From: Vitrella brassicaformis CCMP3155
Lineage: Eukaryota; Protista; Chromerida
NCBI GenBank assembly: GCA_001179505.1
Contig: CDMY01000553.1
Coordinates: 275,203-339,202, forward strand
DNA length: 64,000 nucleotides
Direction: 5' to 3'
Part shown: positions 37,750 through 45,351 of the stretch, in pieces
Layout of the letters: each line of letters begins with the position of its first letter
Position numbering within the stretch: position 1 is the first letter of the stretch
Notes under the pieces: model-generated
What the model saw: the letters and a program-made list of their open reading frames with translations, nothing else
What the model was told of the DNA's origin: nothing
The model's database searches: none
Translations under genes and position numbers: made by a program

Positions 37750-39493
37750 ATGAGTGCAATGGCCCGCATTCCTCGAGTTGTGTCGAAGCGGCTCCCCAGC
37801 CGGCGATGGACGAAGGAGAAATGGAGCCGGTTCGAGAAGGAGTCCAAGCCGGTGACAATCGAGGGCAGTGCAGCGACAGGGAGGAGGCGGCTGGTGAATG
37901 TTGGTGTAGACATGGTGATACGACGGATCTACGGGGGAATGCAATGGATCAGAAAGGACGGGTACGCTGCGCTACAAGTGCCATGCGCCGGGCGGCGGAT
38001 CTTTGCATGTGTCTTCGTGTGTGCTGTGCGTGCGTGGCAGGCCGTTGCTGATTCACTATGCGGCAGTATATCGTGACCACCATGACCAACTGCGTGTGCT
38101 CAGCATCAACCAACACACGCCTAAGTCAGAGATGGACTGGTGGGCGCCACACCGCACAGCACAGCACGGTACACGGGGATTCATCCAACATCATGATGCG
38201 CTGTGAATGAGTGTCTGGTGTGTGCGTGTGTCTTTCTTGTCTTGTCAGGGTGCACCTGCACTTCCTCCGTGCCTGTTGTGACGGCATCCTCACGACGGGC
38301 CAGATTCTCAGATCCGAGCCGTCACTCACATTCGAGCACAAGCAGACCACATACTTCCGGCGGCAGCTTATGGCCGACAGGGAAGACATCGTGGACAAGA
38401 CACACGACGGTCCGCTGCAGGTGTACGTCTTGACATCTGGTGACCACCTGCTGCGGGATGGGCAGGCCGGCAGGAGTAAGGGGCGGCCGATGCTCGAACA
38501 CAAGACAATCAAGGTGGGTGGGCTGAGTACGAGATCTCACGTATCCTCTGTGTGCGCATGTTTTTTGTCGCTCTGGCTGTGTCTGTGTGTGTGCACTCAG
38601 CATCGCTCGTCATCGTGTCAGGTGAATCTGCTGGTGCCGCCAGACAGCCTGCCGGCCGTGCGCAAGGCGCTCGATGGCCGGCCCTGGGTGCAAGTGCTTC
38701 CGATCTCATCACCGCCGAGCAGGAGGGCAGCATCGGCATATGCACGTCAGGCCGACAACAGCGGAGAGACTGACACCATACCTGACATACGTAAGTCAGC
38801 TGCATGTTCTATGAGGACCATCCATCGCTTGATGTGCTCCACATGTCTGTCCATTCAGGCCATCTCCCCTCCCTCAGCAGCCATGCAGCCATCCACTCGG
38901 CCATTTCCCACCTGCAGCACATCAAGAGCACCAGAGCCCCAGCCAACCGACGTCAGCCGGCAGCGGCACAAGACGCCACACCAGCCGACAGGGCAGAGGG
39001 CCCCTCAGTGCGTCTGGGCATCGAGGCGGGTGCGTCGATCAGCCGGTCGCTTCTGCTTCGCAAGGAGGTGGACGTCATCTTCCTGACGGTGTATGCGGGG
39101 CAGGTGCCGCAGAACTGCCAGGTGAGGTGCGCTTGAGTGGCGGGCCAAACGCACCAACGGGGGCGTGGGTGCGGTGCGGATGGCTGTCATCCCCATGGCT
39201 TGTGGCTGCTATGTGGTGTGCAGGGCAATGTGCTTCTTTCTGCGGATGAGCTACGGGCGCGGTACACGTGCTGGCGGGCAGCCACTGAGGTCAGAGAGAG
39301 AAGAGGATACACACATGTCTTTTGTCGGCAAAGTGCCAAGATGGGTGTGTCTGTTTCAGGGTCACTGGACAGTGCTGTGCTTCCGACCAAGGCAATGAAG
39401 TATAGGGGAGAGTGCCATGGCGTGTGCAGATACTCATTTGAACGTCTCGTGTGTATGTTGACTGACATTGCTGATATCGATACGATACGCTGA
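37750..39493 (+). CDS. Divergent RibD C-terminal-type (pyrimidine reductase / DHFR-fold) protein
   Basis: VHLHFLRACCDGILTTGQILRSEPSL resembles RibD H.LRA..DAI.VG..TV..D.P.L. LGIEAGASISRSLLLRKEVDVIFLTVYAG resembles VLVEGG..L...FL...LVDEL. Arg-rich N-terminus. SLDG motif not seen. Confidence 0.6.
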
Positions 39494-39975
39494 TTGATTG
39501 ATGTGCAAAGTGATCGATGCGGTCCGAAAAAGAGAGACACGAGTGGGTCTGCCCTCGAAATAAGTGACTTTCGAAATATGCAGCCAGCCATCTTCACTTG
39601 CCCCTGACCTGACCCACAAAGCACTAATGTCTAGGTAACTAAGGACACGATGCGCTCACCCCGCCCCGCCCGTGTACAGGAACAAGAACACACCCACACA
39701 CGCCGCTGGGCAGAGCAACAAAAAGCCGAGCAGGAGACAGCAGCGCAGCAGCCGAGAAACAGCATCAGACCATATACATACGTCAGGTAGACATGAGTCC
39801 GTTGAAGGCGGCTGCCGTCCGTCTGAGCGACTGCACCACCATGATGGCACACTCAGGGCCGTACTGACGGATCAGCCCCTCAGATAGCCACCCGACGCAT
39901 CCCTCTGGGTACTGGTCAGCGTGTTGGTGGTGCTGGTGGCTCCATGACGTGTGCCGCGGGTTGGCCGCCATCCCC

Positions 39976-42900
39976 TCACCCTTCCAAAACGACGTGCCGA
40001 TGCCGCGGCCGCAAAAAGCACTGAGTGAGGCAACAAGAGACAGACAATACGATGCATGTCAGGCTTTTGTATCCGTCGCTTGTGTCCGTGCGTACGCTCT
40101 GTCGAGTCGTCCTTCGCCCTGCATTACGCCGTTGACGAAAGCTGTCTCCTGACAGGACAACAGATAGAAAGGAGAGCAGCCAGATGGGCAAGGACCATGT
40201 CGGCCGCCGGTAGTCGATGTCTCTGGTACTTTTTGTCTGAGGTCCATGCCGTCGACTGTGAAGCCAGCCGGCACCAGCCAATTCAGCAACATGCGGCCTG
40301 GAGGGAAGGAGCCAGGTGATGGATGCGCTTTGTAGGTCGCGTGCCTACGAGGGCTGTCTTACCGGGGAGTTTGTTTGGCGCCTCCTCGTCTTCCTCAAAG
40401 CCCTTGTCGGCTGGGCAAGGCACAGGATCCTCTGACCCAAAAGGAAGAAACAAGTCATGGGAGTGTTGCGCGCAATATGGATGCTGTCCTTTGCCCACTG
40501 TCTTCTCTTTGTCCATCCGACGTGTCTGCACTCTTCTTCTGCAGGGGAGGAACAGACACGACGCCGTAAATCATCAACCAACATGTGTGTCTCCATCCGT
40601 ATATTCAGCGGCTGACCCTTTGCCTCTTGGCCTTGGCCTTGTTGGTCTGCAGTTCCACTTTCCTGCCCTCGAGCACATAGCTCTTGAGCTCGGCCTGCCG
40701 TGAGTGGTGCACTGCCACACTGTTGAGGATTACCAAGGCGTTCCGGTAGTTCAGACTCGTCGCTGCAAGACACCCCATCGTGGACATGAAACGGCAGACA
40801 CCTCCTCTCTCAACAGCGTGCCTACATGGGCTGGACAGGCATGTGACGGCAATGATTGTGAGGTCGTTCATGCCGCTCTTGCACTGGATGAGGGCGGCCA
40901 GCAGTGACCGCCAGGGAGAGGGCGTGACGATACCCGGCTTGTGAGGCACCGGCGTGTCACACAGATGCTGCAGGTCAACGACACAGACAGATGCAAATAC
41001 TCTGGACGGGGAATGATTCATGCACGATGCTTACCCCTGCAGGGACCACGTCTCTGTCCCCATAGCACCAATACTTGAGCAGCACTCTCTCGTCCTCATC
41101 CGACAAAGTGCCTTCTTCTGCCTTTTCCTCCCCTGTCTCCCCCACGTCGTACACCACCCCTTGCTTCAGCAGCGAATACCCCAGCAGACGAGTCGAGTAG
41201 TTGCAGACCTGCTGCTGCGGCCCCTCCCGAGGCGCTAGAGGTGACCCGGTCACACTGCCAGGACCCCCCTCGCTGCCACAGTCGGCTCGACGGTGCGCAG
41301 TGCTCTTGATCGGGCTGCCTCCGACCTTGCCAAAGACGGTCTCGCGCATTGGTCTGCCGGTGGATGGGGGGACGTTGACGTCTGACGACTGTGTGGGCTG
41401 GGTTGAGCGCTTGGTTGCTCCTGGAGAGGGGTACGGGCTGTCCTTGTCTTCGCTGCTTTGGGTGGGCGGTGCGCTTATGTTGGAGTACCACCAGTCTTCC
41501 TGAGGGCGCGGCGCACAGGAATACGTGTGCAAGAGGATAAGCGATGGTGTCTGTGTCTCCCTACACACCAGTCTTGAGTAGAGGGCTGCTCCTTTTTGCG
41601 CTTTCTGCCTGTTCTCTTCTTCCCTTCGTGCCTTTTCCTGAAAGATATCTCATTATATAGGACAAGGCATTCTTGCACATGAAAATCGCCTTACCTCTGG
41701 GTCCTCCGCTTTGGGCGCAGGCGCCCTTCCCGCGTATGTTCCAGTCAGAGGCGCCCTCTTCGACCCGCTCTGACCGAATGGAGGCGCTCTTCCCCCCGTG
41801 GCATCGCTTTCCGTCCTGGTCAGGCCGAGCGGCATCAGTGCGTCAGCCATGTTGGTCCTGTTCTTTGTCATATTGAGCTCGCCCCCTGTCTGTCTGTTCG
41901 CCTTGGAGTCTGCCGCCGCTGGGGCGATGGGAGTGGAGGTCCTATTGCCGGGAGGAGGGTCTGTACCAAGGGACACAAACAGTGTCGATTCGAGAAGGCA
42001 TGAAGTGGGTCCGCTCACCGAGCGGTCGGAGTGCTTCAGCGGACCCTTTCCCCTTGCCGCCTCGACGCGCATCTTCCGTTTCCGCCTCAGCTTTCTCCGG
42101 CCTCAGCTCTCTCTTCACCATCTCAGTCGCCCCGACTGCGCTGCGGTATCGCACGTCTCCGCCGACCGATCGGCCTTTGGCACGGTTTTCGGGCGCTCTG
42201 CTGCTCTGATCGTCGCCTTTGGTTACCTCCTGTGCGAATGTCCGAATGAATCCCTGCAAGGAACAGACGGTGTCGCTGCAGAGACTGTGTCTCTGTTGGT
42301 TGGTGCTGACCCTTTGAGTGAGCTCCACACTTTCGAGGAACTTGAGTGTGAAGGGAATGATCCAGATGAGGACGATAGCGGTGAGGATACTGACGATGCA
42401 CGTGATGCACTTCATGACGGTCAACACCATCTGCGTCGACGCCTGCATATTCACCACCAGAGACATGTACGTCAAGGGTAGGTATGGCGGGCAGCAGAGG
42501 AGAGCTCACCAGCCAAGCCTCTTGGAAGGACGACAGAAGATGCGTCATGCCGCAGAAGAAGATGAAAGCCTGCAAAACATGCACACGGAGACAAGATGGG
42601 AAAAAAGGACTCTGAGACGTGAAATGGATGGATGCGTCTCACGATAAACAGCGATCCGACACACAGGAGCTCCAGCGACTGTCTGGCAGTGAAGTCAGCG
42701 CTGCCAAGCTGACGGCTCATGGGGAAGAAATCTGCAAACGAGACGACAGGCGATCTGTGAGGTGCGAATCAGAGATGAAGAGGTCCACTCACCGACTCGC
42801 AGCTTTGACTTGGTGAGAAAGAGAAACAGTTGCAGCGGGATCGAGACATAAGAAATGGCAATCAATACGTCAAACAGGGAGTCCAACAGACGCTGAACAA

Positions 42901-43353
42901 GACACAAACACAGCAAACAAATGTTGAATTCAAGCACATGCAGCCATCACAGTCACTCATCTTGACCTGCGTTGAGGACGAGTGTGTGAGGAGGTATTGG
43001 TGCCCTCCGTCGGTCTGCACGATAAATGCCTGGGTTCCCTTGAGCACCATGTGCACTCCCACCTTCTGCCCCCCCTCATCGGTGAACCGGCACGTCACAT
43101 GCTCCCCTTCCCGCCCACCCCCCAAGTGACTGTCCCGATGAAGCCGTCTCTCGCTCGTTCCGTTGGCTGCAGGGCCCCGCTTATGCGGCGGCGGCGGCCG
43201 TTCCCTCTTCGATGGCCACCACAGCTTGTGCAGGTGGTGAGGGGCGGGTGTGTTCTTGCGCAGGTTGTTGTTCACGGCGGGTGAGAATGCAGGCAAGGAG
43301 GCGAGCAGAAGGATGGCTGCCAACCACCACCGCATGAAAGCTGATGGGCGCAT
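39976..43353 (-). CDS. Ethylene-receptor-like membrane protein: signal peptide, N-terminal extension, ETR1-type three-TM ethylene-binding domain, and long cytoplasmic tail without recognisable kinase
   Basis: Phase-checked exons: 42892-42793 RLLDSLFDVLIAISYVSIPLQLFLFLTKSK; 42731-42643 ..LELLCVGSLFI; 42569-42510 AFIFFCGMTHLLSSFQEAWL; 42442-42311 ASTQMVLTVMKCITCIVSILTAIVLIWIIPFTLKF. These match ETR1 TM1-3. The 3' end is uncertain (40455 or ~39976 depending on splicing). Confidence 0.85.
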
Positions 43354-43463
43354 GTTGTGAATGGAAGATAAAACAGGACGTTGAGCCCTCTTCGAGATCA
43401 ATTCGCACTTTTTTCCCTCCTCGAGATCCCATCCTTAAGCTCGCAATCGCGATCCAATCCCAA

Positions 43464-45351
43464 ATGGCGTCTGCTGGCGGTGGAGCGGCGCTTCGGAGGA
43501 GAAGGAAGAAGGTGCTGATATGTGTGTCGACCTTCGACGAACATATGGACTTCGCGCCATCCATGACGCAATCTTCGCCGCCAGATGCGCCAGCAGGCAC
43601 GGCTGACCACCCTGCGCCTCTTGCACAGGCGGCTCTCCCATCAACAAGCTGTGCAGATCAGCCCCTTCCCTCACATGCTGCCCCGGTGCCTGCGGCCGGT
43701 CAGCAGCAGCTAGAGATAGAGGAGGGAAGCAGCGATATCATGAACGTAAGCAAACAACAGCATGGCAAACACACAAACCACGGGTGTTTTGTGTTTCAGT
43801 ATCGCAAACGGCAGCGTAAGCGTTGGGAAGCCCAGCAGCAGCTGCAACAGGAGGCAAGTGCAGCAGCAGCTGGGGATGAGGGAGAGGAGGCGCGCAAGAC
43901 GTCCCGGACGTCGCTGACATCTTCGCCTGCAGCACGGCCGGGGTGTGTCGTGTGCGCATCGTCTGTGGCAGCTGCTCCATCTGAAGCGAAAGCCTAGTTG
44001 CAGCTTCTGTCCTGGTATGTGTGCTGGTGTGTACGTGGAGGCAGGAAGAGAGCCGCCATAGCTACCTACAATGTGTTGTGCTTGTGACTGAATCAGGAAT
44101 GTGGACGGGTGCGACAAGAGGGATTTAGATGTGCGGCAGGCGGCCGTCTATGAGTGGATCAAGGAGAACAAGCCAGACATCGTCTTCCTCCAGGAGGTCG
44201 TCAACACAACGCTGGTCGGTAGACCTGTCACGATAACAACACAATACATGCGACAAGATACATGCGTGCCCATTCACAGTGCACTTGCGTTGTTCTGCAG
44301 ACCATCCTGCGCAAGCATCTGTCATACACATATGAGATAATCACACCCAAACACCAACTGTGAGCGACAGGATGGATGCTTACACACTCACCATTGCCTG
44401 TCTGTCTGACTGTCATTTGTTTGCTTGCGTCAGGTTCAGCGAACAGCCGCCTTGCAAGTCGTGTCCTCATGTTTGTGCCATCCTGCTGGCCAAACAGTCC
44501 ACGCGGCCGTGCAGCGAGCCGTCGACCTTGTGGTACCCCAACAGCAACATGCGGTGGGTGCCAACCGCCATCTCCCAGCGAACCGATGTTCGTTGGGTCA
44601 TTCTGCACGCACCTCACCTGCTGTGTCTTCCTGTCCTGTCATGCAGGCATTTGCTGAGCATCCGTGCTCGCCCTACAGCCGCCGCGGCAGCACATGCGGA
44701 GGTATCAGTCAGCCGGGCACATGTCTGGATGCCATGTCCGCGGTATCGCTTGATTGCCTGCTTCTCTCTTCAGTTGAAGCTGGCTACGAGCCACATGGAG
44801 AGCTTGAAGCACAGTAGCTATCAACGTGTAGACCAACTGCACAGGACCGTCGAACTCATGGACCGGTACGAAGCGCAGAGCAGCACACAGAAGTGTGCAT
44901 CAGATCTGGGCTGCATGCAGGTGTCGGGACGACACCGCCACGCCCAACGTGTGTACGGTCATCGTAGGAGGCGCCCTCAATCTGCGAGACTGGGAGGTGA
45001 ATTGTGCAGGTACTCTTTTCTGCCGTGGAGATACCAAATATCCCGTCATGTTTCCCTTTTTCTCGCCTCTGTATGTGTTTGTGTGCAGGCAGCATGCCCC
45101 CTCACATTCATGACGTGTGGGAGCTGCTGGGCAGGCCCGAGGGCTGTGGCGGCACGTGGAAACCTCACGGCGACAGCCACGTTTCCCGCCGGTTTGACAG
45201 GCTGCTGATCACACACCGGAGCCAGGCAGCACCTGCCTGCCGGTGGCAGCCCGTGTCGATGGAGCTGGTGGGCAGTGGCCGCTTGCTGTACGGCAGTGGC
45301 CCCTTCATCTCGGATCACTGCGGGGTGCTGGTGCAGCTGCAGCTCAGCTGA
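43464..45351 (+). CDS. TDP2: TDP2-like tyrosyl-DNA phosphodiesterase (EEP family), possibly inactive
   Basis: LLSW|NVDG, PDIVFLQEV, ATSHMES..QRVDQL, TVIVGGALNLRDWE, DVWELLGRPE..TW, RFDRLL and ISDHCG align along the human TDP2 catalytic domain. Confidence 0.8.

Follow-up and report, generated by a model that had tools for sequence, protein, structure and literature searches.

We analysed a window of 64,000 nucleotides (nt) from contig CDMY01000553.1 of Vitrella brassicaformis CCMP3155, and all coordinates given here are positions within this window. On its minus strand lies a gene of 16 exons and 852 codons. Four consecutive exons of this gene, E1 to E4, almost certainly encode a genuine ethylene-binding domain (EBD) of the ETR1_N family (Pfam PF25487) at approximately residues 130-246 of the protein, as judged from the translated sequence. 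A preliminary description of this DNA had proposed four exons bounded by GT and AG that join in frame. These exons are indeed present at the proposed minus-strand positions, with flanking introns of 57-74 nt, and the translations quoted for them are correct. All 15 introns of the gene are of the GT..AG type and measure 57-81 nt. It had also been said that the domain appears in no single open reading frame (ORF), and in the ORF list each of the exons falls in a different short ORF.

Evidence for splicing comes from transcript assemblies made from public runs that contain DNA of the window, whose contigs we aligned to the window. Five joints surround the four exons (42252/3>42310/1, 42441/2>42509/10, 42568/9>42642/3, 42731>42793 and 42892>42967), and all of them occur in transcript contigs. 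Run X6 holds all five, run X13 three and run X12 one, while the contig of run X1 represents the unspliced genomic form. These contigs show that the gene is transcribed and that its exons are joined in the way proposed, with the transmembrane (TM) exons neither skipped nor re-phased. Neither alternative joints nor retained introns were seen in this gene among the transcript contigs, which drop rare variants, so that minor isoforms are possible. A splice donor that was first suspected at 42226, between CAGGAG and GTAACC, is not used, as the RNA contigs continue to 42019.

The 852-residue protein of the RNA-based model is letter-for-letter identical to CEM22599.1 of Vitrella brassicaformis CCMP3155 (UniProt A0A0G4G2Z9; P0001 in our searches), which UniRef names 'Ethylene receptor 1-like N-terminal domain-containing protein'. 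Vitrella belongs to Alveolata, Colpodellida, Vitrellaceae, so the initial impression of an alveolate-like protist was right. However, the domain is not hidden, as had been stated: the spliced model of the gene became public when the genome was annotated, and its UniRef name derives from ETR1_N. The suggestion that it might be new for the lineage likewise has to be given up, given the identical protein in NCBI and UniProt and the alveolate ETR homologues listed in reviews. In short, the domain is real but already catalogued, and the sequence finding adds nothing to the UniProt/Pfam annotation and two reviews. What is unusual is the predicted architecture of the protein, i.e., a leader and luminal extension, a loop insert, the lack of a kinase, and an orphan cytoplasmic region.

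Table 1. Exons of the EBD gene and neighbouring features, as positions within the window. Residues are numbered in the 852-residue protein, and the column of key residues gives the ETR1 equivalents in brackets.
Feature	Position	Strand	Residues	Description	Key residues (ETR1 equivalents)	Basis
EBD gene, whole	43353..39783	-	1-852	16 exons, 852 codons		
Exon 0	42967..43353	-	1-129	ATG at 43353		ORF, hydropathy, joint 42967>42892 in RNA contig of X6
Exon 1 (E1)	42793..42892, 100 nt	-	130-162	TM helix 1	D137 (D25; codon 42871-42869), Y144 (Y32), I147 (I35), P148 (P36)	ETR1_N profile match, alignment columns
Exon 2 (E2)	42643..42731, 89 nt	-	163-192	Cytosolic TM1-TM2 loop with 21-residue insert (predicted), start of TM helix 2		Extra sequence when aligned with 12 bacterial members of the family; RNA joints (X6, X13)
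Exon 3 (E3)	42510..42569, 60 nt	-	193-212	Core of TM helix 2; putative Cu(I) ligands	I195 (I62), C198 (C65; codon 42554-42552), T201 (T68), H202 (H69; codon 42542-42540)	ETR1_N profile match, invariant columns
Exon 4 (E4)	42311..42442, 132 nt	-	213-256	TM helix 3, then start of cytoplasmic helix	K223 (K91; codon 42412-42410), T226 (T94), S230 (S98), T233 (T101), P242 (P110)	Profile match, phmmer
Exons 5-15	39783..42253	-	257-852	Stop at 39783		RNA-contig joints, continuous frame
Neighbouring gene	GT..AG joints 38138-39358	+				Contig of X6
Neighbouring gene	from ~43482, joint 43745>43800	+				Contig of X6

The assignment to ETR1_N rests on a profile match and on individual residues. The Pfam model has 97 positions and a gathering threshold of 27 bits; the spliced protein matches it with 58.5 bits and an E-value of 8e-16, and matches no other Pfam family. 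When the exons are scanned singly, three of them match the profile in colinear order, namely E1 at profile positions 5-32 (26.9 bits), E3 at 45-59 (17.3 bits) and E4 at 65-96 (22.2 bits). E2 alone has no Pfam match.

Residues were examined by alignment to bacterial ETR1_N proteins. The comparators were two relatives confirmed by tblastn, from a Rhodomicrobium metagenome-assembled genome (MAG; L001) and from Polycyclovorans (L002/P0002), together with one metagenomic relative (L004), one relative on a viral contig (L003) and 21 further bacterial proteins. A rescan gave ETR1_N scores of 93-126 bits for L001, L003, L004 and P0002; for the 21 bacterial database proteins, PF25487 is part of the precomputed annotation. 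The resulting alignment (A1) has 12 invariant columns, and Vitrella carries the family residue in every one of them. The 13 key ETR1 positions are all kept as well (Table 1). The equivalents of the Cu(I) ligands, C198 and H202, are separated by one turn of helix 2 and lie in invariant columns, and Y144, I147, P148 and I195 likewise all fall within invariant columns. Experiments on ETR1 have established that the binding of copper and ethylene depends on Asp25, Cys65 and His69, and that signal relay involves a coupling of Asp25 to Lys91 of helix 3 and requires the basic character of Lys91 (PMC10266040). A list of required residues that includes Y32, I35, P36 and I62 goes back to Wang et al. 2006, as cited in PMC6324907 and PMC6944256.

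An intact ETR1-type EBD, as claimed in the preliminary description, is thus borne out by the score of 58.5 bits and by the residue columns. A more specific claim, that D25, Y32, I35, P36, I62, C65, H69, K91, S98, T101 and P110 all have equivalents at exact spacing, needs correction. All of these residues are present and the spacing within each helix is preserved, but the spacing between helices is not: P36 to I62 is 47 residues in Vitrella versus 26 in ETR1, and H69 to K91 is 21 versus 22. The longer distance from P36 to I62 is due to E2, which lengthens the TM1-TM2 loop by a lineage-specific insert of 21 residues.

The polar pair formed by D137 and K223 has the D-K form in Vitrella, in contrast to the N-M form of the bacterial GGDEF group. 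Among the bacterial ETR1_N proteins, the columns of Asp25 and Lys91 covary (L001, L003, L004, P0002-P0021), with D accompanied by K or R in kinase-linked members. An N-M pair is found in all members of the group around the Polycyclovorans PAS-GAF-GGDEF protein, which includes one histidine kinase, P0017. This pattern of covariation fits the bridge proposed in PMC10266040. For the bacterial N-M group it suggests a low ethylene affinity or a different ligand. A further observation on the bacterial family is that the viral-contig relative (L003:2351-3520, from IMG/VR), a kinase of 389 residues with the arrangement ETR1_N-HisKA-HATPase_c, lacks the equivalents of Y32 and P36.

The closest sequences to the Vitrella domain are bacterial, with 30-35% identity by tblastn (Rhodomicrobium MAG 35%, Polycyclovorans 30%). 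They belong to proteins of differing arrangement: EBD-PAS-HWE kinase in the Rhodomicrobium MAG, EBD-PAS-HisKA kinase in the metagenomic relative L004 and EBD-PAS-GAF-GGDEF in Polycyclovorans. When 1.84 billion cluster representatives were searched exhaustively by phmmer with the TM3 exon (44 residues), the sole match was P0001, at residues 213-256, and a word-indexed search with residues 125-260 also returned only the protein itself. Scanning metagenomes with the domain yielded bacterial EBD proteins only, one of which is on the same contig as L002. A search seeded with the Polycyclovorans domain gave 21 proteins, all of them bacterial, and returned no plant or cyanobacterial receptors. The tblastn comparison of the Vitrella domain with 50,697 phage records gave no match. 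We also observed that the ESM Atlas lists stand-alone ETR1_N proteins of 107-138 residues that are attributed to bacteria and Uroviricota.

Hydropathy delimits three segments, at residues 131-157, 178-208 and 211-253, which correspond to three consecutive TM helices. An AlphaFold2 (AF2) model of the domain, built from a 13-sequence alignment, has a mean pLDDT of 78.8 and a pTM of 0.67, and its three long helices span model residues 9-43, 55-89 and 96-142. When this fold was compared with reviewed UniProt models using Foldseek, 11 of the 12 best matches were N-terminal domains of plant ethylene receptors (orthologues of ERS2, EIN4, ETR1 and ETR2), at 23-28% identity over roughly 140 residues. 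The ESM Atlas model of residues 125-260 gives TM-scores of 0.69-0.76 against Streptophyta ethylene-receptor clusters and bacterial ETR1_N kinases. A sequence search of the PDB with the domain found no match, and no experimental structure was found. The modelled fold is consistent with the assignment but is not independently decisive, and the case rests on the sequence evidence.

Upstream of the domain, residues 5-28 form a hydrophobic segment that resembles a signal peptide, and the N-terminal extension of approximately 105 residues that follows it (residues ~29-129) matches no Pfam family. Signal-peptide cleavage would leave this extension luminal or external. From hydropathy and the distribution of charge, the C-terminus and the TM1-TM2 loop, which is rich in K and R, would be cytosolic, as in ETR1. 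Dimers of ETR1 are linked by disulfides through the N-terminal residues C4 and C6. No cysteine pair was found before helix 1 of the Vitrella protein; its mature N-terminal extension has a single cysteine, in the string HVTCRF.

In the cytoplasmic part, after helix 3, there are approximately 290 residues rich in polar and charged amino acids, which are probably disordered, then a less biased region at residues ~545-700 that is possibly folded, and then a C-terminal tail. When the whole protein and segments of it were scanned with Pfam (E<=10) and NCBIfam (E<=1), neither detected a GAF, HisKA, HATPase_c, receiver (Response_reg) or any other domain in addition to ETR1_N. The same profile scans readily detect the kinase and receiver domains in the bacterial comparators. 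For the roughly 600 cytoplasmic residues no relatives were detectable, and a word-indexed search with residues 540-852 returned the protein itself alone. Because no GAF, kinase or receiver module is detected, CEM22599.1 is a member of the ETR1_N domain family but, on its predicted architecture, is not a receptor of the ETR1/ERS type.

We considered whether a GAF fold might be present in divergent form. An ESM Atlas feature search with residues 535-852 returned mainly GAF clusters, at values of 0.87-0.93 with 116-128 shared features, which is the range obtained with shuffled sequence. The resemblance is suggestive in that a GAF domain follows the sensor in canonical receptors, and the region in question (residues ~545-700) corresponds to window positions 40617-41499. 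However, a GAF fold for residues 535-852 is unsupported, as Pfam finds nothing at E<=10 and hhalign against 14 bacterial GAF segments gives a probability of 0.15. A single-sequence AF2 model of the C-terminal part has a pLDDT of 32.6 and is unusable. Residues ~545-700 could be a cryptic GAF domain or an unrelated fold.

Two observations concern the surroundings of the gene. One transcript contig of run X6, 6669 nt long, spans three genes on alternating strands (window 38248-43800), i.e., the EBD gene and the two plus-strand neighbours in Table 1. The untranslated regions of the three genes abut or overlap, which implies very tight gene packing. Separately, marine sediment metagenome runs (X10-X18, 2023-2025) contain 5-43% of the 31-letter words sampled from window 41800-43400; DNA nearly identical to that of Vitrella is present in marine sediment samples.

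Our overall reading is that the gene probably encodes a membrane protein in which an ETR1_N domain acts as a kinase-independent sensor of the Cu(I)/ethylene type. By analogy to ETR1 (PMC10266040), each monomer would hold one Cu(I), coordinated by C198 and H202 with D137, and ethylene or a similar small olefin would bind to this copper. Through the link between D137 and K223 the change would then reach helix 3 and, beyond it, the cytoplasmic part. As GAF, histidine-kinase and receiver domains are all missing, the output must be kinase-independent, and it would most plausibly consist of ligand-dependent contact between the lineage-specific cytoplasmic region and partner proteins. It is important to emphasize that the parts of this reading differ in confidence. 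That the domain binds ethylene in a physiologically relevant way is a proposal that, given the residues it retains, we favour by a small degree. Any specific output mechanism, including the one just outlined, is doubtful. A more far-reaching version is unlikely, though it can be stated concretely: an alveolate EBD with wholly kinase-independent output, exerted either through a partner-recruiting cytoplasmic module (possibly GAF-like in a cryptic form, at residues ~545-700) or through a ligand-gated cation pathway in the three helices, which would amount to chromerid-specific sensing of ethylene or olefins.

Several points weigh against a sensor of this kind. Biochemical evidence of copper or ethylene binding exists for no alveolate protein. 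As no output domain can be recognised, a role in signalling is an assumption. Assembly could be altered by the 21 residues inserted between TM1 and TM2, and also by the lack of an N-terminal cysteine pair like the one behind the dimer disulfides of ETR1. The Foldseek scores against plant receptors are weak (E-values of 0.2-2, TM-scores of 0.40-0.48), and two of the three RNA runs give transcript contigs of low depth. Finally, the searches described above found no orthologue.

The simplest objection to the domain itself would be a chance likeness between hydrophobic helices, or splice sites chosen to fit. It has some basis in that TM segments are of low complexity and prone to spurious weak matches, and in that each exon scores below 27 bits when taken singly. 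However, three matches that are colinear on one profile and reach 58.5 bits (E 8e-16) when spliced are not what chance would give, the splice sites come from RNA contigs and not from fitting, and the polar D, C, H, K, S and T residues are all in place. Profile colinearity, the spliced score, the RNA joints and the signature residues exclude chance similarity, and we give this explanation practically no weight. It is also quite improbable that the protein is an evolutionary remnant, derived from an ancestral sensor kinase of the ETR type by loss of the kinase, with an N-terminal domain of little or no function left behind. The missing output domain and the roughly 600 orphan cytoplasmic residues, much of them low-complexity, would be expected of a remnant, and the failure to find an orthologue with the TM3-exon query among the 1.84 billion cluster representatives points the same way. 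Yet the 852-codon frame is open across 15 introns in a gene that is transcribed and correctly spliced, and all 13 key positions are intact, of which a drifting sequence would be expected to lose some.

A different kind of alternative accepts a working Cu(I) site but not a receptor of an ethylene signal. The site might respond to another ligand of Cu(I) (an olefin other than ethylene, or carbon monoxide) or to copper status itself, or the domain might have an activity intrinsic to the membrane, e.g., as a Ca2+-permeable pore, with the tail serving as a regulatory region or scaffold. Such a role is compatible with the lack of any detected kinase, GAF or receiver domain and with the diversity of outputs joined to bacterial ETR1_N domains (HWE kinase, HisKA kinase, PAS-GAF-GGDEF), and the small stand-alone ETR1_N proteins imply that the domain can work without a kinase. 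For the pore, two sources (bioRxiv 10.1101/2025.10.20.683334 and PMC13261662) report Ca2+ permeability for plant ETR1/ERS1 and for rice OsERS1/2. However, that channel activity has been reported for green-lineage receptors only, and the three helices by themselves are not known to confer it. More generally, Vitrella keeps the full set of residues associated with high-affinity ethylene binding, including the D-K pair, for which a ligand of the ethylene type is the simplest explanation. We consider this alternative unlikely.

Outside plants, few organisms have been demonstrated to perceive ethylene, namely Synechocystis, Azospirillum and a mushroom, the last on weaker evidence. If the Vitrella domain is binding-competent, it would extend functional sensing of ethylene or olefins to the alveolates, in a free-living, photosynthetic, coral-associated relative of the apicomplexan parasites. 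If the proposed reading is true, the protein would be a natural case of a sensor without a two-component module, and would bear on kinase-independent signalling by plant receptors. What gives the finding its value is that it calls for an experiment on binding and that the cytoplasmic part lacks an explanation.

The Arabidopsis receptors ETR1, ERS1, ETR2, EIN4 and ERS2 share with the Vitrella protein three TM helices, the 13 key residues and the spacing within helices. The N-out/C-in topology predicted for Vitrella would also be common to both. Plant receptors of subfamily 2 have a hydrophobic N-terminal leader, and the leader of the Vitrella protein resembles it. However, the Vitrella protein lacks GAF, HisKA, HATPase_c and receiver domains, and has instead the 21-residue TM1-TM2 insert and the roughly 600 orphan cytoplasmic residues. 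Its luminal extension of approximately 105 residues also differs from the short N-terminus of Arabidopsis ETR1 with its two dimerising cysteines.

The bacterial ETR1_N sensors, of which Synechocystis SynEtr1 and the Azospirillum ethylene receptor are characterised examples (PMC11819568), have the same invariant columns as Vitrella. Two of our comparators, L001 and L004, additionally share with it the D-K pair and the helix-2 string AFIFFCGMTH. In contrast, helix 1 of the bacterial proteins is preceded by a conserved PHGYC motif that is absent in Vitrella, and they have no loop insert. Their domain is coupled directly through PAS to a kinase or diguanylate cyclase, unlike the arrangement in Vitrella.

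Among eukaryotes other than plants, a survey of 67 eukaryotes for HisKA/HATPase_c described seven Vitrella histidine kinases, none of them as an ethylene receptor (PMC6324907). Because that search relied on HisKA/HATPase_c, both of which are lacking in CEM22599.1, it could not find this protein. The same survey reported the first ethylene-receptor homologues from the stramenopile-alveolate-rhizarian (SAR) group, HK12-15 of the diatom Fistulifera, as well as homologues in Acanthamoeba, early-diverging fungi and Capsaspora. ETR homologues in zooxanthellae, which are alveolates, are listed in PMC6944256 (2019). PMC7700396 (2020) gives a pooled list of SAR homologues of cytokinin and ethylene receptors that includes zooxanthellae and chromerids; according to that review, the domain arrangements of these homologues suggest a broad range of outputs, and none had been functionally tested. 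A full-text literature search for Vitrella together with ethylene gave nothing further of relevance. The non-plant homologues described in PMC6324907 are all histidine kinases, whereas the Vitrella protein is kinase-less. What the non-plant eukaryotic ETR homologues and the Vitrella protein have in common is the three-helix domain with all of the residues needed for ethylene perception.

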